Positions 5,241-63,281 of a stretch of DNA of 64,000 bases are shown here, in pieces. How positions within the stretch are numbered: the stretch's first letter is position 1; each line of letters begins with the position of its first letter. Source of the DNA: Trichosphaerium sp. ATCC 40318 (Eukaryota > Protista > Tubulinea). The translations under genes and the position numbers were made by a program. The notes under the pieces are model-generated. The model was not told where the DNA came from. It saw only the letters and a list, made by a program, of their open reading frames with translations, and ran no database searches. The DNA is taken from the NCBI GenBank assembly GCA_038496445.1, contig JALMLS010000039.1, forward strand, positions 55,096 to 119,095, in the 5' to 3' direction.

Positions 5241-5631
5241 ATCTTTATTTCACCACGATGCGCATTAAGCCACGCTGTTGGAGCCGCTCAGTGATTCTGT
5301 CTTGTTAAAAGCTCAAAATCATTTTCAGTAAGCATCTCTGGCAACATATCTCCACTAATCACAGTTAGATTATACTCATAAGGTAATCTAATCTTCCACT
5401 GTGTAAGTGGAATATATACTTGAGTGCAACTACATTTTGTGTAAGAAGTCATGTTATCAGCTTTGAAAATTAGTCCTAAAGCAATGGAGATAATAGTAAG
5501 TTTTTCTTACTGATTAATAGAACTTTATTAGAGCAACAACTACTTACATATTGCACATGACGTGAAATAATTTTGCTGCATGTTTCCAAGCTAATTAATT
5601 TTGCACCTGCCACTGCCTATTACTACAACCG

Positions 5632-6456
5632 TTATTTATTGATAGTGTGTGCACCTGCCAATGCCTTCAAACCTTCATCTGTTACATCTGTATATGATAA
5701 ATTAATATCATGTACACCTGCCAATGCCGCAATGCCATTGTCTGTTATTGCCTTACAACAATATAGGTTGATAGTGTGTACACCTGCCAATGCCTTCAAA
5801 CCTTCATCTGTTACATTTGTATATGATAAATCAATATCATGTACACCTGTCAATGCCGCAATGCCATTGTCTGTTATTGCCTTACAACAATATAGGTTGA
5901 TAGTGTGTACACCTGCCAATGCCTTCAAACCTTCATCTGTTACATCTGTATATGATAAATCAATATCATGTACACCTGCCAATGCCGCAATGCCATTGTC
6001 TGTTATTGACATACAACCACATAGGTTGATATCATGTACACCTGTCAATGCCGCAATGCCATTGTCTGTTATTGCCTCACAATAATATAGGTTGATAGTG
6101 TGTACGCCTGCCAATGCCTTCAAACCTTCATCTGTTACTTTTGTACATGATAAATCAATATCATGTACACCTGTCAATGCCGCAATAATGTCGTTTGGTA
6201 GCTCACATCGGTTGAGATCAATAGTTGTATTGTGGAGTAACGGACTACCAGAAAGCATCTGAACTTCATTTGTGTTTTTAATATGGATACGACCATACCC
6301 AACATGGTTATGAACAATATCTCGTAAAAAATGGCACGTTTGGGCTGTACGAAGTGTATACGTCCCTTGTTTGATAATATGGACTATTAACTCAATTGGT
6401 AGCCCAACAAGGTCGAATACTTGGTTGAACTGTGTTTGTTGTTTTTTCTTTTCCAT
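5632..6456 (-). CDS. F-box-like + LRR protein, family copy 1 (8 internal repeat units, C-terminally truncated), intronless
   Basis: N-terminal FDLVGLPIELIVHII...AQTCHFLRDIV (LPxE F-box-like pattern), then 21/22-aa units xGVHDIDLSxTxVTDEGLKAL and AGVHTINLxxCxAITDNGIAAL. First ATG at 6456 (the ORF track starts at an upstream TTG). Ends abruptly AHTINK* without the cap seen in copies 2 and 3. Confidence 0.85.
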   Translation of the reverse strand: MEKKKQQTQFNQVFDLVGLPIELIVHIIKQGTYTLRTAQTCHFLRDIVHNHVGYGRIHIKNTNEVQMLSGSPLLHNTTIDLNRCELPNDIIAALTGVHDIDLSCTKVTDEGLKALAGVHTINLYYCEAITDNGIAALTGVHDINLCGCMSITDNGIAALAGVHDIDLSYTDVTDEGLKALAGVHTINLYCCKAITDNGIAALTGVHDIDLSYTNVTDEGLKALAGVHTINLYCCKAITDNGIAALAGVHDINLSYTDVTDEGLKALAGAHTINK

Positions 6457-6815
6457 TGTATGATCAATGTCAATTTTCGTCAAATAATCGTACTAAATAG
6501 CGTACAAGTGTTGCGAGCACAAGTATACTGCGAGAAAAGTTAATTTATTATCTAAAAAAGGTGGCTTAATGCGTGGTCTACCTTAATCTCATGAATTTAC
6601 AAACGTAAAGTTGTTATTTTGGTATCAAGTTCATTGGAGTTATTAAGGACTTCATGTCACGCAGTGACGTAATGGAACATCTTCTCAATGTTGTTTGTTT
6701 TAATCAATTTCTACACTCGTAAACTTAAAAATCCACAAAAAAAAAACAAGAAAAGCAAAAGTGGATATTGATTGGGAAAGCAAGTTTTTACTTTTATTTT
6801 GAATTACTGTTATAT

Positions 6816-13946: not shown

Positions 13947-14753
13947 TCACTGTGTTTTGTTTTTTTTAATTTGGTTTGCAAGAAGCTCTTTGTTTACAAT
14001 TGTATCACGTAATTCTTTGTTATAAGGTTCTCCATTCTCGAACCATATTTTGACATCACTCTTCTTTCCATCAACGTATGTAACTTGTAACTTTATTTTC
14101 CCATTATCATGCCACTCCTTGTGCTCACCAACCTCATTTCCATCAACGTACATTGCTTGTAACTCAAGTTGTCCGTTCTCATACCACATCTTTACTTCAC
14201 CATTATTTTTTCCACGAACAAACACAGATTGTGCTTTAATTTGTCCATTCCTATGCCACTCCTTGACATCACCATGTTTCCTACCAGCAGTATACATAGC
14301 AGAGAACTTGATTTGACCATTCTCATACCATCCTTTTGCCTCACCATGTCGCTTACCAACAATGAACATATCTTGAAACTTGAGTACACCAGTCTCATAC
14401 CATGCCTTGTACTCGTCATACAATTTACCTCGAAAATACAAAGCCTTTGCCCTGATCTGACCATTCTTATACCAACCCTTATACTCACCACTCTTCTTGC
14501 CATTATCATAGACAGTTTTGCTTTTTAAACTGCCGTCATTGTACCAAAGAATCCAAACACCTTTTTTTTTGAGATAATCATCATAATGAGTGTTAATAGC
14601 AGCTTTTTTTGAAAGCACGTGGAACTTTACAAATGTTTCCTTGTTGAAACTACATAGATACTTTTGGAGTTCGTTTGGAAGTCGTAGAATGTAACAAATC
14701 TTGGCACAAGGGTATGTTTGTACCAAGGTTGGTTCTTTTTGTACTTTTCGCAT
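13947..14753 (-). CDS. F-box-like + MORN-variant (MORN_2/YwqK-like) repeat protein, intronless
   Basis: CYILRLPNELQKYLC N-terminal motif, then about 7-8 24-aa repeats of type GExKxWYENGQIKxxxxYxxGK. Confidence 0.85.
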   Translation of the reverse strand: MRKVQKEPTLVQTYPCAKICYILRLPNELQKYLCSFNKETFVKFHVLSKKAAINTHYDDYLKKKGVWILWYNDGSLKSKTVYDNGKKSGEYKGWYKNGQIRAKALYFRGKLYDEYKAWYETGVLKFQDMFIVGKRHGEAKGWYENGQIKFSAMYTAGRKHGDVKEWHRNGQIKAQSVFVRGKNNGEVKMWYENGQLELQAMYVDGNEVGEHKEWHDNGKIKLQVTYVDGKKSDVKIWFENGEPYNKELRDTIVNKELLANQIKKNKTQ

Positions 14754-15609
14754 GTTTGTGGTTGTTGTACTTGCTTACACCTCCCAACAGTACTCTAATG
14801 TATTATCTAGAGTTGTTTTGATTGTGACAGCGTTTAACTAGTCTCGCAGGTACAGATATGCTTATGCAACGGTAAAGGCAATTTGGCGAGGAAACTAAAG
14901 TCAAAATGTTTCGTCACGTGACAACCTGATGTTAGTCTTGAGTGCTGGCTCATGATGCCTCAGTATCGTCAAACGTATGGCAAGCTTTGTTCAGGTGGGA
15001 GTAGAAGTTATATACTTGTACAGCAGTTATTGGCTGAAAAACTGGATTGCTCTCTAAAATCAAGCAAAAACAATAATCTATTGTTATCTACGCGTATAGA
15101 GGGCGTTTCTGCGTATTCACAGTTCAGATTTTTCAAAAGGCAATCACGTGACATAACATCTCTAAATGCAAACTAAGATTTATACACACAGACATTATAT
15201 TCATGTACAACATAGGTGGTGAAGGCAGGGTAAAAGGTAGTGCCAGTGTTGTTCGATGCTTGTTTTAGCTTAACACTCTAACTTCGGAGAACTGTGCGAA
15301 AATGGTATCTGGCACATTCTGGCGGTGGTCCCAAAAGAGCAATCTGTGCGTGTTATTATTACTGAACTATATTGTATTTTCTTTTCGTTAGCGCTTTAAC
15401 CTGTCACGTGTTCCTACTGGTGATATCAGGCGTGCTTCATTATTCAAGGTACTCCTAACTAGCTCAATTTCAAACGCCGCTATTACACTAGAGATGATAG
15501 GGACGAGACGTCAAAACGACGTGGAAGGACATTAAGGCAACCACTATAAGTCAAGTTTAACTTTCACTTTAGGCTAATACCACTTTGTATAACAAATAAA
15601 CACTATAAC

Positions 15610-18085: not shown

Positions 18086-19601
18086 CGAAAACTAACAGTT
18101 ATCAATGGAAAAACAACAACAAACACAGTTCAACCAAGTATTCGACCTTGTTGGGCTACCAATTGAGTTAATAGTCCATATTATCAAACAAGGGACATAT
18201 ACACTTCGTACAGCCCAAACGTGCCATTTTTTACGAGATATTGTTCATAACCATGTTGGGTATGGTCGTATCCATATTAAAAACACAAATGAAGTTCAGA
18301 TGCTTTCTGGTAGCCCATTACTCCACAATACAACTATTGTTCTCAGACTGAGTGAGCTACCAAACGACATTATTGCGGCATTGGCAGGTGTACACACTAT
18401 CAAACTATATTATTGTGAGGCAATAACAGACAATGGCATTGCGGCATTGACAGGTGTACATGATATTGATTTATCACATACAAATGTAACAGATGAAGGT
18501 TTGAAGGCATTGGCAGGCGTACATAAGATTGATTTATCATCTACAAATGTAACACATGCAGGTTTAAAGGCAATTTCAGGTGTACATACCATCAGGTTGG
18601 ATTACCACAAAAATGTAGAGCTACCAGATATTAAAGCGTTGACAGGTGCACATAAAATACGTTTCGCCTATAAACTGTGATAAACAAGCTCAAAATCAAG
18701 ACATTTATCACTTTTATCAATTATCCTTATTCAACTCCAGCATGAACATGTACAACTGTTACCTTACCAAAGGTCGCTGAAATGGGGACCAGGATTGTAT
18801 TTTATATATGTCAACACTGAAGGGAACAAAACTAGTTAGGTCTTTCCACGTGTACAAAAAATAAAATGACTTCCAAATTTCTCAATTCTGCAAACAACAT
18901 TGTAATACGCTACATTTTGATTTACTAGCTAGCTACTGGATTTTTATCTATTGTAGTCACGTGTTTATTATTACAAAATTACATGTTTTTCTCTAGTCGC
19001 GTCTTCTCAAACACGTGAGCAGGTGAGTATTATATGAGTGCCCGAATACGTGACTGTTGAACACTTGAATCCTGTGGGGCAATGGACCTCTGTCACCAAC
19101 TAATTGGTGTGCACTCTCACGCGATTTATTCAAAAAAATTGTGTCCCACACGTGACTTTTATCAAAAGAACACAAAACGAAAAACTGTTCGAATTTTCAA
19201 CGTCTTAGCTTAGGTTTGTTTACCACACCTTCTCCGCCATTTCTCCCCACGCCATGGGAACGTGCGACAGAGAAAGTTGATCAACTTTAGTGTTTTTAAG
19301 CTACACAAGCCATATGTTGCGTATATAATGATATAAGCGTAGTAGTGCACACTACAAACAAAATAAAGCCTACCCCTTTTAATTACGGCGCTATTTGTTC
19401 CGCACGGGCAAACGTATACCCAAGCGCGTTATAAACTTACAATAGTACGTTATGGCGTTATTCAAGAACACGAACTCAGTGTCGTCGCTGAAATAAGGGC
19501 TTTTTGTTATTCCGGTTTCTGACTTAACGGCCTTTTTGTCCGTTCTGTTTTATTGGCATTTACTACCTTACAAGCATACCAACGCAATGAATATACTTGT
19601 A
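18086..19601. repeat. Inverted segmental duplication arm (partner 27883-29917)
   Basis: The LRR gene, its 3' flank and the P450 promoter plus first 5 codons recur in reverse complement at 27883-29917; the partner lacks about 19157-19485. Confidence 0.9.
18105..18680 (+). CDS. F-box-like + LRR protein, family copy 2 (2 internal units plus cap), intronless
   Basis: N-terminal about 75 aa essentially identical to copies 1 and 3; units B, A, then cap AGVHKIDL...SGVHTIRLDY...TGAHKIRF. Confidence 0.85.
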   Translation: MEKQQQTQFNQVFDLVGLPIELIVHIIKQGTYTLRTAQTCHFLRDIVHNHVGYGRIHIKNTNEVQMLSGSPLLHNTTIVLRLSELPNDIIAALAGVHTIKLYYCEAITDNGIAALTGVHDIDLSHTNVTDEGLKALAGVHKIDLSSTNVTHAGLKAISGVHTIRLDYHKNVELPDIKALTGAHKIRFAYKL

Positions 19602-21970
19602 TTAGCGTTTCAAGGACTATTACTGTTGCTTTTAGCATTAGTAATACTTGTTTTGATTCTAGTAGCTCGTATGTACCTACCAGGGTATATTTACGTACTT
19701 GTGGCACTATTTTATTATCCAAACGTTCCAAGACATCCAAACTACAAACCAAACCTTTCAGTATTCGTTCCACGCACAGAGTAAGCCAATGGACTAATTC
19801 AATCAACGATCAAAGTGATTAAGTCTTCAACAACCAACGATTCGTTTCTAGGTTCGGTAATCGACGTGAAGACACTCCAAGAGATAAGAATGGTACTATA
19901 ATTGATCGTAGGATTGACTATTAACAGAATTACAACAGGCGTTTGGGAGAAATTTTTACTCCGGTTTATACCTGGAAGAAGAATGGAGGCTCATTTCCAA
20001 ATTACGGATCCTGACCTTGCAAAACAACTTCTTATAAAAGAGAACCTTCCAAAGAATCTTTCGTCTTATACTGCTCTTGAACAGCTTATTGGTAAAGGCT
20101 TGGTATCACTACAAACAGGATCTGAGTGGAGACATAGAAGGAGATTATTAACACCTTTGTTTTTCTTTAACACACTTGCAAGGATGGTGCCTTTAATGAG
20201 TACGGTGTTTATGTTAATTGATTATTGCTCTTTGGTTCTTTTTGTACTATTTTTTATTTTTAGTTTTGACACGTGATCTCTTTAGATGATGTATCAGAAC
20301 GTTGTTTGAAAAAGTTAGCTGAAAAAATAGATAAAAACGGAGGAAAATATGAGTTAGTTCCAAGAGAGGAATCGACAGTTATTACACAGAGTATGTATCG
20401 CATTACTTAATTAAAACTTTATCAAGGTGACTAATAACAATATTAGACATGATTATAGCACTTATCTTTGGCGGGGAATTCGACCAAGAATGGTAAGTTG
20501 TTTCTTTGCTTTTTTTTCTTTTTCTTTTCGTTTAATAATTTTAAGGTTCGGCGAATCGTATGGTAATTTGCTCAAAACATTCCGCTCCTATATGTTATCA
20601 AAGTTCGCCCTGGGACCTTTTGCAGGACTACTTCCTTATGCCAGGTTCTTAAGCAGTTGTGAAATTTAGACTGACTTCTGTTATTAGAAAGTTCGAATGT
20701 ACAAGAAGCCAAATACGAGACAAACTCAAAGAATTTATTGAAAAGAGGAAAGTTCAGGTCGATAACAATGAATTATCCGATGATAGTGCTGATTTAGTAG
20801 CACTTATGCTCAAAGACAACGGTGATGGTCGTTTATCTGATGACACTATATTAGCTGAATCTTTGACATTCTTCTTTGCTGGCTATGATACAGTACAAAG
20901 AAAACTTGTTTGTATTTCTGTTGATACTGACCTCGCTTTTATAGACTGCAAATCTTTTCTCATGGATACTTTACTATCTATCAAGATACCCAGATATTCA
21001 AGAGAAATGTAGAATGGAAATAGAGTCAGTAGTTGGTACGTGAAAATTTTTCCGAAAAAACATCTTTCAATTAAAATAAAAAACTTAACAAAGTTGTCCA
21101 CAGGCGATGCCAACACAATAACTAAGGACAATATTACAAAGATGGAATACGTAAAAGCATTCATAAAGTAAGTACATTAATACAATCATCACACACTAAT
21201 ATTTTCAAACAGGGAAACACTTCGAATGTCTCCACCTGTAACAATAATACCAAGAAAAACAACAAAACCAATGAATATCGCTGGCCATTCCATTCCAGCA
21301 AATACACCGATTTCAGTCAGCTTCTACGCTATGCTTCGTCATCAATTACATTGGTACGTATATAATAAATGTCAAGTTATGTATATCTAAGTGTGGTGCT
21401 ATTGTAGGGACAAGCCAAATACGTTTAAACCTGAAAGATTTATGAACGGTTCTTCTTCAGAAAAACAATCAAAATTCTGCTTTGCTCCTTTTTCTGCTGG
21501 TGTTCGTAATTGTATTGGACAAAAACTTGCTATGATGGAAATAAGTATACTAGTTGCAACGTTTTTAAGGAAATTTAAAATAGTCAAACCAAGTGGTACG
21601 TCAAACTATCCAAAAAAAAAACTTTAACTCCAAAAAAAAACAACTTCAACTCCAAAAAAAAAAAGGCTTTCACCGAGCTACTCTACTTCTGTTTTCCGTT
21701 TGGTTTCTATTTCCAAAATAATTGTATTCGTGTGGTTGGGAATTAATACTTGTCATAAAAACCGAACACTTGGGAGTGAAAAATGTTGGCTCTTTTTTTT
21801 TTTGAAATTTCGTGATTTTTTTTTTTTCTATGTTGATTTTATTGTTAACCTTCGCTGTTTAAGGTCAAAATGAGGATCCAACTGATGCCAGAAAAGTTTT
21901 CTATGGAAGTATACTAACAGAACCAAATCCTAACCTTACCGTAATCCTGAAACATCGCAGTAAGGCTTGA
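19587..21970 (+). CDS. Cytochrome P450, multi-exon
   Basis: N-terminal TM anchor MNILVLAFQGLLLLLL, WRHRRRLLTP (C helix), FFFAGYDT (I helix), KETLR (ExxR), PERF, FSAGVRNCIG heme ligand; TGA at 21968-21970. Confidence 0.95.
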
Positions 21971-27882: not shown

Positions 27883-28484
27883 TACAAGTATATTCATTGT
27901 GTTGGTATGCTTGTATGGTAGTAAATGTCAATAAAACAGAACGGACAAAAAGGGCGTTAAGTCAGAAACCGGAATAACAAAAAGCCCTTATTTCAGCGTG
28001 GACATAATAGTCACGTGTGGAACACAATTTTTTGGAATAAATCACGTGAGAGTGCACACAAATTAGTTGGTGACAGAATCGATTTCGAGAGGTCCATTGC
28101 CCACAAGCTTCAAGTGTTCAACAGTCACGTATTCGGGCACTCATACCTGCTCACGTGTTTGAGAAGACGCGACTCGAGAAATTACATGTAATTTCGTAAT
28201 TGACTACAATAGATAAAAATCCAGCAGCTAGCTAGTAAATCAAAATGCAGTGTATTACAATGTTGTTTGCAGAATTGAGAAGTTTGGAAGTTGTTTTATT
28301 TTTTGTACACGTGGAAAGACACCTAACTAGTTTTGTTCCCTTCAGTGTTATAAAATACAATCCCGGTCCTCATTTCAGCAACTTTTGGTAAGGTAACAGT
28401 TGTACATGTTCATGCTGGAGTTGAATAAGGATTATCAATAAAAGTGATAAATGTCTCGATTTTGAGCTTGTTTATCACAGTTTA

Positions 28485-29891
28485 TTAGGTGAAACGTATT
28501 TTATGTGCACCTGTCAACGTTTTAATATCTGGTAGCTCTACATTTTTGCGGTAATCCAACCTGATGGTATGTACACCTGAAATTGCCTTTAAACCTGCAC
28601 GTGTTACATTTGTATATGATAAATCAATCTTATGCACACCTGCCAATGCGTTCAAACCTTCATCTGTTACTTTTGTATATGATAAATCAATATCATGTAC
28701 ACCTGCCAATGCGTTCAAACCTTCATCTGTTACTTTTGTATATGATAAATCAATATCATGTACACCTGCCAATGCCGCAATGCCATTGTCTGTTATTGAC
28801 TCACAATAACATAGGTTGATAGCGTGCACACCTGCCAATGCCTTCAAACCTTCATCTGTTACTTTTGTATGTGATAAATTAATATCATGTACACCTGCCA
28901 ATGCTGCAATAACATTGTCTGTTATTGCTCTACAATAACATAGGTTGATAGTGTGTACACCTGCCAATGCCGCAATGCCATTGTCTGTTATTGCCTCACA
29001 ACAATATAGGTTGATAGTGTGTACACCTGCCAATGCGTTCAAACCTTCATCTGTTACTTTTGTATCTGATAAATCAATATCATGTACACCTGTCAATGCC
29101 GCAATGCCATTGTCTGTTATTGCCTTACAACAATATAGGTTGATAGTGTGTACACCTGCCAATGCCTTCAAACCTTCATCTGTTACTTTTGTAGATGATA
29201 AATTAATATCATGTACACCTGCCAATGCTGCAATGCCATTGTCTGTTATTGACATACAACCACATAGGTTGATAGTGTGTACACCTGCCAATGCCGCAAT
29301 GCCATTGTCTGTTATTGCCCCACAACAATATAGGTTGATAGTGTGTACACCTGCCAATGCCGCAATGCCATTGTCTGTTATTGCCCCACAACGATATAGG
29401 TTGATAGTGTGTACACCTGCCAATGCCTTCAAACCTTCATCTGTTACATTTGTATATGATAAATCAATATCATGTACACCTGTCAATGCCGCAATGCCAT
29501 TGTCTGTTATTGCCTCACAACAATATAGGTTGATAGTGTGTACACCTGCCAATGCCTTCAAACCTTCATCTGTTACTTTTGTATATGATAAATCAATATC
29601 ATGTACACCTGTCAATGCCGCAATAATGTCGTTTGGTAGCTCACATCGGTTGAGATCAATAGTTGTATTGTGGAGTAATGGACTACCAGAAAGCATCTGA
29701 ACTTCATTTGTGTTTTTAATATGGATACGACCATACCCAACATGGTTATGAACAATATCTCGTAAAAAATGGCACGTTTGGGCTGTACGAAGTGTATATG
29801 TCCCTTGTTTGATAATATGGACTATTAACTCAATTGGTAGCCCAACAAGGTCGAATACTTGGTTGAACTGTGTTTGTTGTTGTTTTTCCAT
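28485..29891 (-). CDS. F-box-like + LRR protein, family copy 3 (15 internal units plus cap), intronless
   Basis: Same N-terminus as copies 1 and 2; unit order A B A B B B A B A B B A B A A then cap; first ATG at 29891. Confidence 0.9.
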   Translation of the reverse strand: MEKQQQTQFNQVFDLVGLPIELIVHIIKQGTYTLRTAQTCHFLRDIVHNHVGYGRIHIKNTNEVQMLSGSPLLHNTTIDLNRCELPNDIIAALTGVHDIDLSYTKVTDEGLKALAGVHTINLYCCEAITDNGIAALTGVHDIDLSYTNVTDEGLKALAGVHTINLYRCGAITDNGIAALAGVHTINLYCCGAITDNGIAALAGVHTINLCGCMSITDNGIAALAGVHDINLSSTKVTDEGLKALAGVHTINLYCCKAITDNGIAALTGVHDIDLSDTKVTDEGLNALAGVHTINLYCCEAITDNGIAALAGVHTINLCYCRAITDNVIAALAGVHDINLSHTKVTDEGLKALAGVHAINLCYCESITDNGIAALAGVHDIDLSYTKVTDEGLNALAGVHDIDLSYTKVTDEGLNALAGVHKIDLSYTNVTRAGLKAISGVHTIRLDYRKNVELPDIKTLTGAHKIRFT

Positions 29892-30115
29892 TGTATGATC
29901 ACTGTCAATTTTCGTCAAATAATCGTACTAAATAGTGTACAAGTGTTGCGAGCACAAGTATACTGCGAGAAAAGTTAATTTATTATCTAAAAATGCGTGG
30001 TCTACCTTAATCTCATGAATTTACAAACATAAAGTTGTTATTTTGGTATCAAGTTCATTGGAGTTATTAAGGACTTCATGTCACGCAGTGACGTAATGGA
30101 ACATCTTCTCAATGT
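29892..30115. repeat. Upstream region shared with LRR copy 1 (direct repeat of 6457-6691)
   Basis: Near-identical sequence ending at cttctcaatgt in both (6691 and 30115); copy 3 lacks a short stretch containing ggtggctt. Confidence 0.9.
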
Positions 30116-34159: not shown

Positions 34160-35660
34160 TTGTTAATAGAATAGTACATCCATAAAACGCTGGTGCCATG
34201 ATTTACTGTACTTCTTTTGAAGTACACCATTCATAAAATAGTACTTTGATCTCAATAAACCATTGTCATACCAATGATATGTCTTTCCTTGTAGTCTACC
34301 TTTAACATAAAAACTCTTCTCTTTCAAGTTACCATTTTTATACCACCACTTCTTCTCTCCTTCAAGCTTACTCTTGACAAAATTAGATCGGCTCATTTTG
34401 CTGCCAGAATAATAATAGCATGTTTGAGTTCCTTCTATTCTACCTTTGACATAAGAACACGTGCTCATCAACTGACCATTGAAATACCAAGTCTTTTTCT
34501 CTCCTTCTATTTTACCATTAACGTAATTGCAATGCTCTTTAATTTGACCATTACTGTAGTGACACGTTTTCTCTCCTTCAAGTTTACCATTTACATAGTT
34601 CTTTTCAAACACTTGACCACTCCTGTACCACTGTGTATGTTTACCGTCTCTCATACCGTTGATATAATATCCTTGCTTTGAGAGCTTACCATTCCAATGC
34701 CATTGCGTGTATTTTCCTTCTTTTTTACCATTTACATAGAACGATGTCTCTTTTACTTGTCCATTATAATACCACTGCTCGAGTTTGCCATCAATTTCGC
34801 CATTGGTATAGCGAGTATGTCGATGCAATGAACCATTAATATACCACTTTTTGTACTCGCCTTCTCGCTTATCGTTGACGTAATGACAGTGTTCTTTTAA
34901 GGTCCCATTTCTGTGCCATTTCTTAAACTCTCCTTCTTGCTTTCCGTTGACATAAAAACTCTTCTTTAGCTGGCCGTTCTTGTACCACTTCTTGATCTCG
35001 CCTTGTAGTTTATCATTGACGAAATACCCTTGTTCTCTCAATTGACCACTGTGGTTATACTTCAACCACTTGCCCGTCTTTTTCATATCATAGTTATACC
35101 GTGTTGACATTGCTGCATGTTTTGAAACCAGCGGCCATTTTAAATAGACTTCGGGATCTATATCGCATATATCAAGCTGTATCTCTGGTGGAAGGCTAAG
35201 TAGGTAGCAACCGCGACGAGCACTTGATGGTGATGAGAATACAGATTTACTCTAGTAATAATAGTTAGATGATTGTAAATAGGGATAGTACTGTTACCTT
35301 GGATGACATTGTAGAATGTAGAATTGTTGTTTGTTGTTCGTTTGTTTTATGAAATAATAAATCCACAGTTGCGTTCATGAAAGTGATGCTATGATCGCGT
35401 CGAAATTGCCTCGTGAATATACCAAACGCCAAGCCTTATTCCTGCAATTCTGATAGCAGAAGGTGAGGAAGGTTAAAACGTACTTTGGCTCACATCCATG
35501 TATAATTTTCGGGTGATCTAATTCGGTGATATACTCACGCAGTATTTGTGATATCCTTGAATATTCTGATATTTGTATCACGTGATAATCGAGACTTTAA
35601 GTTAAGGGGATTTATGGTTCACAATACCGGGAAATATTTTTCCCACAACAGTTATTAGCC
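34160..35660. repeat. Inverted duplication arm (partner about 56563-58055)
   Basis: The gene plus about 350 bp of upstream sequence recurs in reverse complement 21 kb away; similarity stops close to the stop codon. Confidence 0.88.
34163..35309 (-). CDS. F-box-like + MORN-variant repeat protein, copy A (4-codon first exon)
   Basis: The ORF extends upstream in frame: MSSK|SKSVFSSPSSARRGCYLLSLPPEIQLDICDIDPEVYLKWPLVSKHAAMSTRY..., then about 12 repeats GExKxWYxNGQL. Confidence 0.85.
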
Positions 35661-45523: not shown

Positions 45524-46843
45524 TCAATCTTCTTCTACTTTTGGCATTGCCGTTTTCTTGTTGTGTTGCTCCATGTCTGTACATTGATCAGCAGCTAGAC
45601 GCTTCACACCAACAAGATGTTTAAGCCCTTCTTGTGTAACAGAAGTACCATTAACATCAATCGTATGAACACCAGCTAAATACTTTAAACCTTCATTTGT
45701 AACTCTTGTACACATTGCCAAGTTAATCTCATGTACTCCTTTCAAATACTTTAATCCATCATCTGTTATATTCGTATACCTCAGATATATAGTATGAACA
45801 CCTGATAAAGACTTAACTCCTTTATCAGATACATTACAACAACAAAGGTTAATCTCATGAACACCTTTAAGATAAGAAATACCATCATCAGTGATCTGAG
45901 TCAACCCTCTAAGATTAATCGTATGAACGCCTTTGAGCGCCTTTATACCTTTATCTGTTACTCTTGTATCTTCTAGATGAATACAATGAACGCCTGCTAG
46001 TGGTATTATACCGTCATCTGTAACTGAAGTGTTTTTAAGGTAAATCGTGTGAACGCCTTTAAGCAACTTAACACTTTTGTCTGTGACAAAAGTATGAGAA
46101 AGATTTATGATATGAACACCAGCAAGAGCAGATACACCTTTATCACGTACTGCACAAGAATAAAGGCTTATTGAGTGTACACCAGAGAGCGATGATATAC
46201 CCTTATCGGTTATAGGACAGCGTGAAAGGTTTATAAGTTTTACACCAGAAAGGAATTTTATACCTTGATCAGAAACAACATCATGAGCTAGATTAATATC
46301 ATGAACACCTGCAAGCGCTCTTAAGTTATCATCACTAATATTACCAGTATCTGATAGATCTATTTTATGAACACCTGATAGTGGTGTCAAGTCTAGGCTA
46401 TCCAAAACGCAGTTTGAAAGAATTATTGTATGGACACCAGAAAGACTTGAAATAATTTTGTTGTTTAGGAATGCACAGTTAGAAATGTCAATGTGTTTTG
46501 AACCAGATAGATAACTTATTAGCTTTGATATAATCTTCACTTTAGATGATTCGTTTCTGTTTATGTTAATACCAAAAGGAAGTTTGATTTTGTCCTTTAA
46601 GGCAACCCATGGCCGTGCCTTAATGCGGGTTATGTTTTTCATTCGTTTGTATTTTTGGAATCGTTTAAAGTCCCATACGGATTTTAAAAGTACTGAGGTG
46701 TATCCCACGTATGTGTGTATTACATGAGCGAGGTTTGTACATGTTTGGGCTACAGCAAAGCGTGATTTATTTAAAAAGCTTAAAATGAACGTTAGAATCT
46801 CCGGAGGTAGAGAATCAAGCGCCACAATAGTCGATCCTTCCAT
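45524..46843 (-). CDS. F-box + LRR protein (divergent family member), intronless
   Basis: LDSLPPEILTFILSFL...AQTC...YVGY, then about 14 GVHxIxL...VTDxGI repeats. Confidence 0.9.
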   Translation of the reverse strand: MEGSTIVALDSLPPEILTFILSFLNKSRFAVAQTCTNLAHVIHTYVGYTSVLLKSVWDFKRFQKYKRMKNITRIKARPWVALKDKIKLPFGININRNESSKVKIISKLISYLSGSKHIDISNCAFLNNKIISSLSGVHTIILSNCVLDSLDLTPLSGVHKIDLSDTGNISDDNLRALAGVHDINLAHDVVSDQGIKFLSGVKLINLSRCPITDKGISSLSGVHSISLYSCAVRDKGVSALAGVHIINLSHTFVTDKSVKLLKGVHTIYLKNTSVTDDGIIPLAGVHCIHLEDTRVTDKGIKALKGVHTINLRGLTQITDDGISYLKGVHEINLCCCNVSDKGVKSLSGVHTIYLRYTNITDDGLKYLKGVHEINLAMCTRVTNEGLKYLAGVHTIDVNGTSVTQEGLKHLVGVKRLAADQCTDMEQHNKKTAMPKVEED

Positions 46844-49859: not shown

Positions 49860-50430
49860 AGTTGCAAAGGTTGTTGATGAGAAACTAGGAAACATAAATT
49901 TCTATTGCGCCAGTGTATTCCTTGACAATTTCATAATCCGCTATTACGTGACTTCAATGGTATGTATTCCATAAAGTGCTTTTAACCCTTCAGCTTTTAT
50001 ATTTGTACAAGACCACCAAGCGAATTTTGTGTACACATGCCAGCTATGCTGTCTGGACGAGAGTGATTTTAGTTTAGGTTTTTATTAGAACATTGTTTGT
50101 AGAATATATTGTTTGTTGATCGCTTTGAAGAACGATGAACTGAAATCACTAAGCCTTCTTGATTAAAGTTATATCACTAAGCCATTTAGCAATACCTCCA
50201 GCTGTTATGTTTGGACAATACTTAAGCAAATGGTATGAGCACCTGCCAATGCCTTCAAACCTTCATCTGTTATTTGATCACAACAATTCAAGTCTACCCA
50301 CCAATGGCTTTAGTACACCGAAAGTCCAATATCCTTGCTCTAAGCTATATTAACAGTGAAAAAAGTGATTTGCTAATACCCCTCAGGGACTGGCTGGTGG
50401 TACATCAAATACTATTTTTTGTGTACATTA
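49860..50430 (-). pseudogene. Decayed LRR gene of the GVHxIxL family
   Basis: CDQITDEGLKALAGAHTICL (50240-50272 closely matches the repeat unit of copies 1-3), LACVHKIRL and EGLKALYGIHTI, with several stops and frameshifts. Confidence 0.75.
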
Positions 50431-51661: not shown

Positions 51662-53562
51662 TTATTGGTGCTGTGACAGGCGTCGAATACATCTACTTTT
51701 TCTGTTTAAACTTGAATAGACTGGTGCTTGTGTTGTTGGAACCTCAGTTGTAGGAGGTTCAGTTGTTGGAGGTTCTGTAGTTGGAGGTTCAGTTGTTGGT
51801 GGTTCTGTAGTGGGTGGCATTGTGGTAGGAGGTTCAGTTGTAGGAGGTTCAGTTGTAGGTGGTGCTGTTGTTGGAGGTTCAGTTGTTGGCGGTTCAGTTG
51901 TAGGCGGTGCTGTTGTAGGAGGTTCAGTTGTAGGTGGTGCTGTTGTTGGAGGTTCAGTTGTAGGCGGTTCAGTTGTAGGTGGTGCTGTTGTAGGAGGTTC
52001 TGTTGTAGGTGGTGCTGTTGTTGGAGGTTCAGTTGTAGGTGGTGCTGTTGTAGGAGGTTCAGTTGTAGGTGGTGCTGTAGTAGGAGGTTCAGTTGTAGGT
52101 GGTGCTGTTGTTGGAGGTTCAGTTGTAGGAGGTTCAGTTGTAGGTGGTGCTGTTGTAGGAGGTTCTGTTGTAGGTGGTGCTGTAGTAGGAGGTTCTGTTG
52201 TAGGCGGTGCTGTTGTTGGGGGTTCAGTTGTTGGCGGTTCAGTTGTAGGTGGTGCTGTAGTAGGAGGTTCAGTTGTAGGTGGTGCTGTTGTTGGAGGTTC
52301 AGTTGTAGGAGGTTCTGTTGTAGGTGGTGCTGTAGTAGGAGGTTCTGTTGTAGGTGGTGCTGTAGTAGGAGGTTCTGTTGTAGGTGGTGCTGTTGTAGGA
52401 GGTTCTGTTGTAGGTGGTGCTGTAGTAGGAGGTTCTGTTGTAGGCGGTGCTGTTGTTGGGGGTTCAGTTGTTGGCGGTTCAGTTGTAGGTGGTGCTGTTG
52501 GCGTTTCAGTTGTTGGTGGCTCAGTTGTTGGTGGTTCAGTGGTAGGCGGGTCCGTTGTTGGAACAGCTGTAGTAGGTGGCAATGTAGGAGGTGTTCCTGA
52601 AAACGTCAATTACGCGGGTTCAAATTGATAGGTATACAAAGAGTGATCTAAGGATACGTACGACAAAAAGCCCCCCAATTTTCACCGCAAGGAAAATCAC
52701 TGAGATCAGTGCTAGGGGAAATGTAAAGACATTCATGACTGCCCATAGTTGGCTGTTGCGAATTATGGTATTCCATAATGTATCTGCCAACATCCGCATT
52801 GTTGGCCGCCTATAATTCGTTAGTGGCCACGTGGTTAGGTATCTTTTAACTTACAGAGCCTACAATGTCCATGTAAAGCGGTGTTTGTGTAAGAGTCAAC
52901 CCAGAGCTTTGCCAGACATAAGTATTAAGATTGTCAATACATTTAGAGCAATCTATGGTACTTGAAGATGCGCTACACATTAAACATCTATACAAAGTAG
53001 CAGATTAATGAACTGTGAAAAGAAGTCTGTCGTACCTAAAACTAACAGCAATTGGTACGTCTCTTCTACCGTTTACCCATCCGCGGCGATTGAAGCTTTT
53101 AGCAGCGGTATAATCTTCGGCAGTGAGTATTTCCGCCAATGTCATGCCTCTAATGTTATTAAACACTATCCACAAAAAGGTATGGCTGATATCAACCCGC
53201 AAAAGGTGAAATCTGGAAGTTTGGAAAATCGGGAAATGTAAAGGAAGTGCTTTTTCTCCCCACACCACCAACAAATTGAGTCCTCGGTTGCCGGAATTGG
53301 GTTATAGCACTCTGAATCTCAAGGGGGGAAGATTTCGTGGCATATTTATTGATGGTGTGGGGAGGAAAAAAGACTTCCATTAACTGGCCAGATTTTCAAA
53401 CTTCCACATTGTTGCCCATTCTCTATCAACCTGCTAGTTAGCGTACTCGTTCTCACACAATTCAGCGGCGCCATCCCAGGGTCCACTTGTAGCTATGTAT
53501 ACAATATCTTGAATAGATGATACAAACGTGGTGACAAGCAAAAAAGGTAACAGAAGATACAT
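51662..53562 (-). CDS. Secreted C-type-lectin-like domain + mucin-like (PPTTE/PPTTA)n protein
   Basis: Signal peptide MYLLLPFLLVTTFVSS; spliced exons WDGAAELCE..GMTLAEI..GWVNGRR..YVWQSSG..QPTMGSHECL..LSDFPC..AFC follow the CTLD pattern; then a long Pro/Thr repeat. C-terminus uncertain. Confidence 0.8.
51735..52585 (-). repeat. 15-bp coding minisatellite (about 55 PPTTE/PPTTA units)
   Basis: Visible periodicity with synonymous variation; a higher-order block repeats at 240-bp spacing (52191 vs 52431). Confidence 0.95.
53199..53423. mobile_element. Fold-back MITE, possibly Mutator-like, in intron 1 of the lectin gene
   Basis: Imperfect inverted arms of about 80 bp (aatctggaagtttggaaaatc...ctccccacaccaccaacaaat versus its reverse complement); flanked by TATCAACCC/TATCAACCT; the paralogous intron near 54745 has one copy of this sequence and no insert. 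Confidence 0.7.
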
Positions 53563-56242: not shown

Positions 56243-56900
56243 ATATCTTAAACCCGTTTAACAATATTGACTGTTTTTATATTGATACCACTATAATACA
56301 CCTAACCCAACGTTTTAAATGCGGGTTTGTCTATTAAAAACGCTTTTGAGATTCGTTGAACGAAAAAAAGAACTAGCAGGCTTTAGCCGCGTAAAAACTA
56401 CTCCTCATGTACTGAATAACGGGTGAGACATCACCAGTAACAAAATAGGTTCAAAAGTAATTTGAAAGTTCTGAAGTTTGGCGAACGATTTGATCATTTG
56501 TGTATTTCTATATAAGTCTACAGTGGCGTAAGAGGTTTCTTACTAGTTGCCACGTTGGCTAGCGCTATTAACTGATGGGAAAAAATATTTCCCTGGTTTT
56601 GTGGAACCATAAGTCCCCGTTAATTATAGTCTCGTGTATCACGTGATACAAATATCAGAATATTCAAGGATATTACGAATACTTTGTGAGTTTTAATTAT
56701 CACCTTATCAAGTATAGGCAAAGAATAATGCACCAAAATACGTTTTAACCTTCCTCACGTGTTCCCCGCTCATAATTGAAACCGTGAGACTTGGGGATTT
56801 TGTGTATTCACGTGATCTCATCGCATCACTTTCATGAACGCATTTATTTGTTAATTAATTCATAAAACAACGAATAACACGCCACGTCTCCGATTCTACA

Positions 56901-58052
56901 ATGTCATCAAAGCGGGTACTATTTAATTCTTTCTATTTATAATTGTCTAACTATCATCGCTAGAGTAAATCTGTTCCCTCAATAACATCAAGTGCTCATC
57001 GCGGTTGCTACCTATTTAGCCTTCCGGCAGAGATACAGCTTGATATTTGCGATTTAGATCCCGAAGTCTATTTAAAATGGCCTCTGCTTTCAAAACATGC
57101 AGCAATGTCAACACGGTATAACTATGATATGAAAAAGACGGGCAAGTGGTTGAAGTATAACCACAGTGGTCAATTGAGAGAACAAGGATATTTCGTCAAT
57201 GATAAACTACAAGGCGAGATCAAGAAGTGGTACAAGAACGGTCAACTAAAGAAGAGTTTTTATGTCAACGGAAAGCAAGAAGGAGAGTTTAAGAAATGGC
57301 ACAGAAATGGGACCTTAAAAGAACACTGTCATTACATCAACGATAAGCGAGAAGGAGAGTATAAAAAGTGGTACAGTAACGGTTCATTACACCGACATAC
57401 TCGCTTTGCCAATGGCGAACTTGATGGCAAACTCGAGCAGTGGTATTATAACGGACAAATAGAAGAGACGTGTTTCTTCGTAAAAGGTAAAAAAGAAGGA
57501 GAGTACACACGATGGCATTGGGATGGTAAATTGTCAAGGCAAGGGTATTATATCAACGGTATACGAGATGGTAAACATACAGAGTGGTATAGGAGTGGTC
57601 ACGTGTTTGAAAGGAATTATCATAATGGTAAACTTGAAGGAGAGAAAATATGCTACTACAGTAATGGTCAAATTAAAGAGCATTGCAATTACGTTAATGG
57701 CAAAATAGAAGGAGAGAAAAAGACTTGGTATTTCAATGGTCAGTTGATGAGCACGTGTTCTTATGTCAAAGGTAGAATAGAAGGAACTCAAACATGCTAT
57801 TATTATCACGGTAGAGTAATGAGTCGATCTAATTTTGTCAAGAGTAAGCTTGAAGGAGAGAAGAAGTGGTGGTATGAAAATGGTAACTTGAAAGAAAAGT
57901 GTTTTTACGTTGAAGATAAACTACAAGGAAAGAGATATCTTTGGTATGATAATGGTAAATTGAGATCAAAGTACTATTTTATGAATGGTGTACTTCAAAA
58001 GAAGTATAGTAAATCATGGCACAAGCTTTTTATTGATGTACTGTTCTATTAA
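56901..58052 (+). CDS. F-box-like + MORN-variant repeat protein, copy B
   Basis: MSSKR|SKSVPSITSSAHRGCYLFSLPAEIQLDICDLDPEVYLKW... in frame with the 315-aa ORF; paralog of 34163-35309. Confidence 0.85.
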
Positions 58053-58397: not shown

Positions 58398-59717
58398 TTA
58401 ATCAGTATAAATATAGACACCACGTTCTACAAGGTACACTTCTACACCTATTTTTTTCAAATCATAAATGATATCTTTGTTGACAGTACTACTATGTTTC
58501 AATTCCTTTAAATATGAGAGTGTACACAAGCTCTCACCTTTTACTTTTGAACATGAATCAATATTAAGAATATGAACTCCAACAAGTTCCGCAATACCCA
58601 AGTCTGTAACTTGCTTACAGTCGAAGATGTTGACTGTATGAGCAGAAGCTAGATACTTCAAATGATCATCTGTGATTTTCGTGTGAGACAAGTTAATGTC
58701 ATGCACACCTTGCAATGCCTTTAAACATTCACCTGTAACTTTTGTTGATGCTAGATCAATAGTATGTACACCAGCTAGCGCCTTGATACCATCATCAGTA
58801 ACTGCTGTGTAGTGTAGATCAATCACATGTACGCCAGCCAAAGCTTGAATGCTCTTATCCGTAATTAATACACACTGACCCAAATCAATGGTATGGACAC
58901 CTTTCAATGGTTTCAAATCATCATCTGTGATGTGCTTATGAGGTAATGTGATCGTATGTACGCCTGCCAATGCCTTCAAACCATAGCCTGTAACATTAGT
59001 TCCAAACAAACGGATTTTATGCACACCGCTCAGTAACTTGATTACCTCATGTGTTATATTTTTACACCAAGTTAAGTCTATAGTATGTACACCTTTCAAC
59101 ACGTTTAAACATTCATCAGAAACACTTGTATTAGTTAAATCAATTGTATGAACACCCTTAAGCGCTTTGACGCCTTCGTTTGTTATTCCTTTACAATGTG
59201 CTAGGTTTATAGTATGTACACCTTTCAGTGACTTTAATCCATTGTCTGTAACGTCTGTATTACGTAGATTAATCACGTGTACTCCAGATAATAGTTTGAT
59301 GCCCTTGTCTGTAATTCTTCGACAATCTGACAAATTAATGTTGTTCACGCCTGATAATGCTTTAATACCCCTATCTGTTATTTCAGAACAAAAAAGATTA
59401 ATAGTAAGGACGCCTGAAAGTAAAAGCATGTTGCTGTCAGTAGCATGGACATCAATATTAGATAAAGTTATTGTTGTATTTTGAAGTAGAGGGCTTCCCG
59501 AAAGTCTAGTCAGCTCGCTTTCGTTCATTACGACAATGTTATTGTATCCAACGTGGTTGTGAACAATATCTCGCAATAGATGGCATGTTTGGGCTGTACG
59601 AAGTGTATACCTCCCTTGGTTGAGAATATGCACAATAATCTCAACTGGCAGCGCGATTAGGTCGAAGGTTTGGTGATTTGAACCACTTTCTATCGTTTGC
59701 TGTTCACGTGCGTTCAT
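58398..59717 (-). CDS. F-box-like + LRR protein (divergent family member), intronless
   Basis: FDLIALPVEIIVHILNQGRYTLRTAQTCHLLRDIVHNHVGY...LSGSPLL, then about 14 GVHTIxL repeats. Confidence 0.9.
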   Translation of the reverse strand: MNAREQQTIESGSNHQTFDLIALPVEIIVHILNQGRYTLRTAQTCHLLRDIVHNHVGYNNIVVMNESELTRLSGSPLLQNTTITLSNIDVHATDSNMLLLSGVLTINLFCSEITDRGIKALSGVNNINLSDCRRITDKGIKLLSGVHVINLRNTDVTDNGLKSLKGVHTINLAHCKGITNEGVKALKGVHTIDLTNTSVSDECLNVLKGVHTIDLTWCKNITHEVIKLLSGVHKIRLFGTNVTGYGLKALAGVHTITLPHKHITDDDLKPLKGVHTIDLGQCVLITDKSIQALAGVHVIDLHYTAVTDDGIKALAGVHTIDLASTKVTGECLKALQGVHDINLSHTKITDDHLKYLASAHTVNIFDCKQVTDLGIAELVGVHILNIDSCSKVKGESLCTLSYLKELKHSSTVNKDIIYDLKKIGVEVYLVERGVYIYTD

Positions 59718-62391: not shown

Positions 62392-63281
62392 ATGAGTAAA
62401 GACGAACGGGAAACTATAGAACTTCTAGACATACCGACAGAGATACTGGCGCACTTGCTTGATTTTTTAGACCGCAGTTATAGATTCCCGCTTCTCAAAG
62501 CTGTAAACGATTATCATCCATAATACTACACCACGTGGGATACAAACGAATCTCTGTTAAATCAAGATCAGACTGTTCACGTCTTTCAGGAAGTCCACTA
62601 CTAATAAACACGGAAATATACTTTGGAGATTTCATAGAAGCAACAGACTCAGATCTTTCTCTAATTTCAGGTGTTCGCAGGCTATTCCTTCGTACAAATC
62701 ATGGTATCACCGATAGAGGGTTACACCGTGCTACTGGTGTTCAATCTTTAACACTACAAGATTGTAAACGCATTACAGATTTCGGAATAGGACCACTTGT
62801 TAAAAATCTTAAAACAATTTGTCTGATAGATGTAGGGTATTATCAATTGACGTTACTTTTTCTTACTGGAATACCGAGTATTAGTTTACCATCATCGAAA
62901 ATACTTACAGATGACATACTGCATAAATTAGCTGGTGTACATACAATCGATTTAAGTGGTTGTAAACGCATCTCAGATAAAGGTATCTCATCATTGGCAG
63001 GTGTACATAAAATATACCTATGTAGCACAAACGTGACCGACAAAGGTATATCAGCTCTTGCTGGTGTGCACACTATTGATATATCTTGGTGTTTGGGAGT
63101 AACTGGATCCTGTATGAAAGATATATCAGACGCATATGAAGTTAAATTATCGTATACTAGTGCCAGTGATTATTGGATTGATCAACTTACCGGCGTCAAA
63201 GTATTACAATTACAAAATTGTAATATTACAAACAAGTGTCTAATTGCTTTGGCACAAAGAGGTGTTACAGTATGTAGGTAG
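62392..63281 (+). pseudogene. F-box + LRR gene with a 1-bp frameshift (pseudogene or assembly indel)
   Basis: MSKDERETIELLDIPTEILAHLLDFLDRSYRFP; one missing base at TTCCCG (about 62488) separates it from ASQSCKRLSSIILHHVGYKRI...LSGSPLL and the LRR ORF. Confidence 0.75.

Follow-up and report, generated by a model that had tools for sequence, protein, structure and literature searches.

F-box gene families of Caenorhabditis and of plants combine a conserved F-box with a positively selected binding domain, and an antimicrobial role has been proposed for them, although not established (PMC8120010). The amoeba-associated Parachlamydiaceae display a massive expansion of F-box/leucine-rich repeat (LRR) and BTB families (PMC4209131), and expansions of repeat proteins and F-box proteins have been described in amoebal giant viruses (PMC5753266). 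For Trichosphaerium sp. ATCC 40318, the genome paper reports giant-virus matches for about 6% of the gene models (1568), chiefly to Harvfovirus, Hyperionvirus, Klosneuvirinae and Tupanvirus, with F-box and MORN being the most frequent domains of these putative giant-virus-derived genes. Here, we analyzed a 64-kb stretch of this genome (contig JALMLS010000039.1, positions 55,096–119,095; hereafter the window), which harbors three closely related F-box/LRR genes, termed c1 (5632–6456), c2 (18105–18680) and c3 (28485–29891). We consider it fairly probable that these genes encode FBXL-type substrate receptors of Skp1–cullin–F-box (SCF) ubiquitin ligases that undergo birth and death in the germline, as part of a large intronless Trichosphaerium family related to families of Mimiviridae-like viruses.

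Parsing of open reading frames (ORFs) and of repeat units, the latter anchored on G(V/A)H, divided each gene into a nearly invariant 91-residue N-terminus and 8 (c1), 2 (c2) or 15 (c3) internal LRR units. Two near-identical unit types were found, A with 21 codons (63 bp) and B with 22 codons (66 bp). Tandem Repeats Finder scored the arrays at up to 1355, far above chance, with periods of 63/66, 129, 195, 324, and 390 bp. In c3, the internal units follow the order A B A B B B A B A B B A B A A, succeeded by a divergent unit A', a cap unit and a short tail; c2 contains B A, followed by A' and cap; and c1 reads A B B* A B A B A, then a partial ninth unit and a stop. As the c1 array breaks off in this partial unit, c1 is devoid of A' and cap. 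Its B* unit is a true A/B hybrid, being of type A at codons 1–7 and of type B for the remainder. At codon 12, the A units have TAT, TCT, GAT, CAT, or TGT, and the B units carry the tetrads YCCE, YRCG, YCCG, CGCM, YCCK, CYCR, CYCE, and YYCE. A preliminary description of this DNA had already reported three paralogs with a near-invariant N-terminus and 8, 2, and 15 units built from the 63-bp and 66-bp modules, a hybrid unit in the first copy, a variable codon after DLS in A and eight variable B tetrads, all of which our parsing reproduced. Antisense ORFs across the arrays (e.g., 28945–29700, plus strand) were taken as by-products of the repeat structure. The elements of the three copies, in window coordinates, are the following:

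28485–29891, minus strand: c3 gene, an intronless, complete F-box/LRR gene of 468 amino acids, with its ATG at 29891 and its stop at 28485–28487

29721–29843, minus strand: F-box-like motif of c3, residues 17–57, starting with LPIELIVHII

29619–29720, minus strand: linker of c3 (HxVGY ... SGSPLLxNT) and N-cap LRR, family-specific according to alignments and containing the variable patch DLNRC

28650–29618, minus strand: array of 15 internal LRR units of c3 (A 63 bp, B 66 bp)

28488–28649, minus strand: divergent A' unit, cap unit, and C-terminal tail of c3, with 92% amino-acid identity to c2

29892–30115, minus strand: 5' flank of c3, common to c1 (6457–6691), with 1.3% mismatch and one 11-bp indel

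27883–28484, minus strand: 3' flank of c3, common to c2 (18681–19162 and 19480–19601), with ~5% mismatch and 7 indels

5632–6456, minus strand: c1, 3'-truncated and devoid of a C-cap; its 8 internal units, one of them the A/B hybrid, are followed by an incomplete ninth unit and a stop

18105–18680, plus strand: c2, a complete short paralog of 191 amino acids with units B, A, A', and cap

The flanks point to the way in which the copies arose. Upstream, c1 and c3 have 224 bp in common at 1.3% mismatch; downstream, c2 and c3 have ~580 bp in common at 5.2% mismatch with seven indels, the c2 flank containing ~318 additional bases that separate its two blocks matching c3. Only ~25 bp upstream of the c2 ATG are common. 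A cassette of ~2.2 kb (27883–30115 in c3) has therefore been copied, whole or in part. Judging from these divergences, c1, c2, and c3 most likely form a very young subfamily, separated by about 1–5% neutral divergence. No convincing terminal inverted repeats or target-site duplications were detected at either end of the cassette. A single orphan LRR-like unit lies ~15 nt past the premature c1 stop and is followed by GTAAGT (about 5540–5620, minus strand); the c1 cassette may have inserted in or beside another LRR gene.

Alignment at the level of units identified c1 as c3 units 1, 2, a 3/6 hybrid, 7, 8, 9, 10, and 12, and c2 as c3 units 2, 3, 16, and 17. Specific variant combinations, such as the CGCM-S unit and the YCCK unit, are common to c1 and c3. 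As unit order is collinear and both shorter copies are subsets of the c3 order, the arrays derive from one ancestral order by deletion and duplication of units and not by free shuffling. The c1 hybrid is the expected remnant of an in-frame deletion of 195 bp (63 + 66 + 66 bp) between homologous A/B stretches, and a 195-bp period is present in both arrays. Thus, the cassette has been duplicated and whole units have been gained and lost by unequal recombination. The proposal of a recombination-diversified gene set therefore holds insofar as germline recombination alters unit number, whereas the different module orders and free re-ordering that went with it do not. A further claim of the preliminary description, a loose analogy to cassette assembly in variable lymphocyte receptors (VLRs), did not survive the comparison: the loci have their own caps and flanks, except that c1 is truncated, and units remain collinear, which fits unequal crossing-over and not cassette assembly.

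To locate amino-acid change within the units, minimum mutation events were counted per codon across the 25 internal units, leaving out changes explained by recombination in the hybrid unit. At least 21 non-synonymous and 5 synonymous events were obtained. Codon 12 of A and codon 14 of B account for four non-synonymous events each and codon 12 of B for three. For this concentration in the top three codons, an all-neutral model in which the synonymous rate is itself uncertain gives a p of about 0.01, and conditioning on the total gives 0.0002. The ratio of non-synonymous to synonymous rates (omega) amounts to 2.6 (p 0.05) for the codons of the xxLxLxx motif chosen a priori (6, 7, 9, 11, and 12) and to 3.4 (p 0.009) once codon 14, corresponding to LRR position 10, is included, an addition made after seeing the data. 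All remaining codons of the unit, here termed the framework, yield an omega of 0.35. The point estimates at the variable sites for the units of this window (2.6–3.4) lie above 1 but rest on few events.

Pairwise comparison of collinear c1 and c3 units revealed 13 non-synonymous changes but a single synonymous one. All but one of the 13 are located within the six codons 6, 7, 9, 11, 12, and 14, which differ at 11% per site compared with 1.5% at flank and synonymous sites (8-fold excess, Fisher p 3e-5). Codon 12 alone differs in 8 of 11 collinear unit pairs. In structural models, codon 11 is the final residue of the LRR beta-strand, codon 12 follows directly and codon 14 lies in the ascending loop, in line with the earlier placement of the variable positions on or just after the strand; they correspond to LRR positions 7, 8, and 10. 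The same three codons are among the most variable positions in 93 units of 17 distant relatives. Replacements thus accumulate where the LRR beta-strand ends and immediately behind it, with an accelerated rate at two or three residues per unit.

Outside the arrays, c2 and c3 differ in their F-box and linker by one synonymous and no non-synonymous substitution over 260 bp, if one patch is set aside; at the 5.2% rate of the flank, simple arithmetic predicts about ten non-synonymous differences in the N-terminus. Together with the framework omega of 0.35, the unchanged F-box and linker place c2 and c3 under constraint. The patch itself consists of six substitutions within 13 nt of c2 (18339–18351) and replaces DLNRC by VLRLS in the N-cap LRR, at the same structural spot as the variable unit codons. 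It had been noted before as following a nearly identical N-terminal region, and it is real. One allele is present in c1 and c3, another in c2, and a third in transcript P0001, whose F-box is otherwise little different. A donor sequence for the c2 patch was not found in the window.

The assignment of the repeats is clear: the Pfam LRR_6 model matches with E-values of 6e-36 (c3), 7e-24 (c1), and 3e-8 (c2), and the units conform to a tandem solenoid of the type LxxLxLxx(C/N)xx. For the F-box half of the proposed F-box-LRR architecture, c1–c3 taken singly score below the Pfam cut-offs, and the assignment comes from the family as a whole and from the fold. A motif start LPxE(I/L)(I/L)xxI is present in the F-box region. 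Each of the 11 N-termini of the family is hit by both F-box models of Pfam at E-values up to 1, the best being 1.8e-7, and two relatives with the same N-terminal domain exceed the PF00646 cut-off (P0002 with 26.5 bits, P0010 with 21.7 bits). In a search of the PDB with a profile of the family N-terminus, 9 of 9 matches were F-box proteins (E 0.005–0.4), including FBXW7, FBXO31, Legionella AnkB, FBXL17, and FBH1.

Structure prediction delivered the anticipated three-helix F-box fold followed by an LRR solenoid. AlphaFold2 modeled c3 with a mean predicted local distance difference test (pLDDT) score of 87 and a predicted template modeling score (pTM) of 0.78, comprising 18 strand/helix LRR turns at a pLDDT of about 90. 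Its N-terminus contains helices at residues 20–28, 33–37, and 41–51 and then a short strand/helix linker, the F-box part reaching a pLDDT of only 57–71. The c2 model (mean pLDDT 79) likewise displays three N-terminal helices, a linker and the solenoid. Foldseek retrieved FBXL2 in complex with SKP1 as the best PDB match of c3 (6o60_C, E 3e-17), and for c2 the Swiss-Prot matches FBXL2, FBXL12, FBXL13, FBXL20, and SKP2A/B, several of these alignments starting at the N-terminus. Based on the family-level hidden Markov model evidence and the predicted fold, the N-terminus is assigned as an F-box plus linker.

Searches for relatives lead to the same organism and to giant viruses. In database searches, the N-terminus scored best against a Trichosphaerium sp. 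ATCC 40318 transcript (MMETSP0405; 83–86% identity). HMMER searches with the 100-residue N-terminus returned only 5 true relatives, along with the spurious bacterial repeat protein P0008. Exact look-ups of c1–c3 and six neighboring proteins found no identical entry in the protein collection, and exact-pattern scans of metagenomes with module A and an N-terminal 20-mer gave no match. A 641-residue protein on a metagenome contig (P0039), apparently from a GC-rich organism, contains ~15 near-identical 21-residue units of type A that vary at the residue after L-S (F, H, G, S, Y, or C), the same spot as here.

Against the viral structure database BFVD, the c3 model aligned best with F-box/LRR proteins of Tupanvirus, Hyperionvirus, and Catovirus (E 6e-37 to 6e-32), with the Tupanvirus F-box protein on top (E 6e-37) and the Hyperionvirus and Catovirus proteins at about 1e-32. 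The similarity covers the full length, with 31–40% identity and TM-scores of 0.66–0.87. In IMG/VR, the 102-kb contig IMGVR_UViG_3300027739_000006 carries a gene (1983–2624) for 213 residues that begins in an F-box-like manner and continues with alternating 21/22-residue units as in c2 (43–47% identity), having a GVHTI(D/N)L core and near-identical unit pairs duplicated internally. Genes for a Nudix protein, an Rpb7-like protein and a capping enzyme are its neighbors. Another relative is located on a 354-kb metagenome contig that appears viral from its gene content. Only the LRR pattern retrieved the viral gene, whereas IMG/VR scans with N-terminal patterns yielded no relative and the linker HxVGY ... 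SGSPLLxNT was not found there. This linker is common to the Trichosphaerium paralogs and transcripts; its presence in these and the negative IMG/VR scan suggest an expansion inside the amoeba lineage. We infer that the family probably expanded within this lineage after, at most, few exchanges with viruses.

In the explanation we favor, the three-helix N-terminal F-box would dock on Skp1 of the SCF ubiquitin ligase, and the solenoid of 21/22-residue LRRs behind the family-specific linker would bind the substrate. The ~2.2-kb cassette was copied to new germline sites, and unequal crossing-over or slippage between near-identical units adds or removes whole units. F-box, linker, and LRR framework are kept constant, while LRR positions 7, 8, and 10 and the N-cap spot change, a change that may be driven, with moderate support from the counts above, by selection for new binding specificities.

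Several points weigh against this explanation. The F-boxes of c1–c3 score 12–17 bits, below the Pfam cut-offs of 20.5 (PF00646) and 24.3 (PF12937). Omega for whole units is 1.3 and indistinguishable from neutrality. The yardstick consists of 5 synonymous events in 25 short units from a single 64-kb window; codon 14 entered the binding set post hoc, and the strictly a-priori set reaches only an omega of 2.6 at p 0.05. Units of different copies are taken as orthologous on the strength of their collinearity, conversion between otherwise identical units could shift existing variants without a trace, short-read polishing may assign variants to the wrong unit, and the truncated c1 may be a dying copy. 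Because of the few synonymous events, the post-hoc codon, the assumed orthology, possible conversion, and polishing, diversifying selection on the predicted binding residues is suggested, rather than shown, by these substitutions.

Some of these points equally feed the alternative that survives best, neutral birth and death, to which we assign a minor but serious chance. Here, young repeats in redundant copies would vary most at the least constrained codons, with some copies becoming pseudogenes. A whole-unit omega that does not differ from 1, the truncation of c1 and the yardstick of only 5 synonymous events are in line with such a scenario, as is the family-wide variability at the same positions, which unconstrained sites would also show. 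However, the variable codons change at a rate 3- to 8-fold above that of synonymous and flank sites, and codon 12 differs in 8 of 11 collinear pairs although neutral divergence amounts to 1–5%. Neutrality likewise does not sit well with the framework omega of 0.35 and with an F-box and linker free of amino-acid change outside a single patch.

A dedicated immune-like germline repertoire of SCF receptors, which would target giant-virus proteins or those of intracellular bacteria for degradation, is doubtful. It is compatible with a conserved F-box combined with a variable LRR face and fits the relatedness of the family to F-box/LRR proteins of giant viruses. Nematode and plant F-box families offer a precedent, with positive selection on the substrate-binding domain and a proposed antimicrobial role (PMC8120010, citing Thomas 2006). 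Receptors of fast-evolving host proteins, or virus-derived genes, would nevertheless give the same pattern. Counting further against it, no virus of Trichosphaerium is known to us. The immune role put forward in the preliminary description is unsupported, as is VLR-like assembly, and the targeting of viral or endosymbiont proteins that it envisaged is conjecture. Equally speculative is a bolder version, a germline repertoire of giant-virus ancestry whose arrays are resized and in which 2–3 residues per repeat are re-tuned, in the manner of the repeat-variable residues of transcription activator-like (TAL) effectors, for ubiquitin-based defence against viruses or bacteria or as decoys for viral F-box proteins.

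Even less probable are virus-derived genes that still serve a virus, or relics of endogenised giant-virus DNA, in place of host receptors. Giant-virus proteins are the best structural matches, F-box genes are listed in the genome paper as putative transfers from viruses, and the genes are intronless in a genome that has on average 8.7 introns per gene and exons of 154 bp. Because the genome is intron-rich with such short exons, long ORFs are rare in the window and the intronless F-box/LRR and MORN genes are conspicuous. The copies nonetheless sit singly among exon-split genes of host type (Myb_Cef/CDC5-like, cytochrome P450, neurochondrin, and RCC1-like), and their loci belong neither to a viral genome nor to an uninterrupted stretch of endogenous viral DNA; the window ORFs that were scanned include no viral hallmark gene. 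The Trichosphaerium linker motif, not found in IMG/VR, also argues for expansion in the amoeba lineage and against this option. The octamer AAAATTGA is located 14–21 nt upstream of the ATG of c1 and c3 (6470–6477 and 29905–29912, minus strand) and is mutated in c2. It is known as the early promoter motif of Mimivirus, but we gave it no weight, as the window shows no enrichment (9 sites compared with 10.9 expected).

Somatic assembly of LRR cassettes as in VLRs, or errors made in assembling or polishing repetitive sequence, could produce near-identical module arrays that differ in order and number, and amplified DNA combined with short-read polishing could misplace variants between units, but both are highly improbable given that every locus holds a gene of its own, complete or, in c1, truncated, between unique flanks, that units are collinear between loci with specific variant combinations in common (CGCM-S and YCCK in c1 and c3), and that the 1.1-kb array is shorter than typical reads of the long-read assembly.

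The window contains further members of the family, as well as other intronless genes. The additional F-box/LRR elements are the following:

58398–59717, minus strand: older paralog of 439 amino acids, with a 60% identical N-terminus and divergent LRR units

45524–46843, minus strand: more distant family member of 439 amino acids, F-box-like with 23 bits, matching LRR_6

62493–63281, plus strand: further family member or fragment, with a partial N-terminus and LRR_6

49950–50276, minus strand: LRR fragment of the same unit type as A/B, detected by tblastn with an A/B unit pair

Overall, the G+C content of the window (about 36–37%) is consistent with the published 37.7% of the genome, which was assembled with Canu from Nanopore and PacBio reads of amplified DNA and polished with Illumina reads. 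Exon-like ORF pieces of the cytochrome P450 gene extend over 19902–21012 (plus strand), starting ~300 bp beyond the flank common to c2 and c3. Intronless MORN-repeat genes are located at 34163–35659, 56564–58052, and 13947–14753 (MORN_2, E 1e-29 to 1e-37). Two of the three lie within a duplicated block of 1.5 kb with 86.6% identity, and one is convergent with the F-box/LRR gene at 58398–59717. The palindrome TCACGTGA occurs at 18 sites in the window compared with 0.74 expected (e.g., at 14914, 15144, 28042, 35578, 56639, and 56808); its sites are mostly intergenic, several of them just upstream of intronless MORN genes, rendering it a candidate regulatory motif of this genome. A 315-codon ORF at 51662–52609 comprises about 55 copies of a 15-nt tandem repeat and has an Extensin-like Pfam match (E 2.5e-39).

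If the diversification of c1–c3 is adaptive, they would provide an amoebozoan example of a rapidly evolving repertoire of SCF receptors that shares its ancestry with the F-box/LRR arsenals of giant viruses, and LRR positions 7, 8, and 10 would be concrete residues that bear on whether host and virus compete via the ubiquitin system. As matters stand, c1–c3 extend the description of a family whose expansion and possible viral origin were already reported in the genome paper, and their evolutionary pattern has been seen before in F-box genes of nematodes and plants as well as in LRR receptors of plants.

Compared with known systems, c3 resembles the F-box/LRR families of giant viruses (Tupanvirus soda lake, Hyperionvirus, Catovirus, Harvfovirus, and Klosneuvirus) in full-length architecture and fold, whereas the genes described here reside in a cellular genome among intron-bearing genes and encode a linker not found in IMG/VR. 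With FBXL-class proteins such as FBXL2, SKP2, and FBXL17 they share the three-helix F-box, the linker and a Cys-containing LRR solenoid. In contrast to that class, with its units of about 26 residues, theirs have 21/22 residues and hardly differ from one another, and the F-box is divergent and scores below threshold. The Parachlamydiaceae families and the F-box effectors of Legionella are likewise F-box-bearing repeat proteins from organisms of the same amoebal niche; those, however, are bacterial effectors injected into the host, and our comparisons showed no close relationship in sequence. The F-box families of Caenorhabditis and plants parallel the genes of this window in their constrained F-box, in the excess of change in the binding domain and in tandem or local duplication; different here are the LRR array with gain and loss of whole units, the amoebozoan organism and a family that giant viruses share. 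In the tomato resistance genes Cf-2 and Cf-5, too, two near-identical types of LRR unit alternate, the number of units changes through unequal crossing-over, and solvent-exposed residues near the beta-strand vary; their products, however, are extracellular receptor-like proteins and not F-box proteins.

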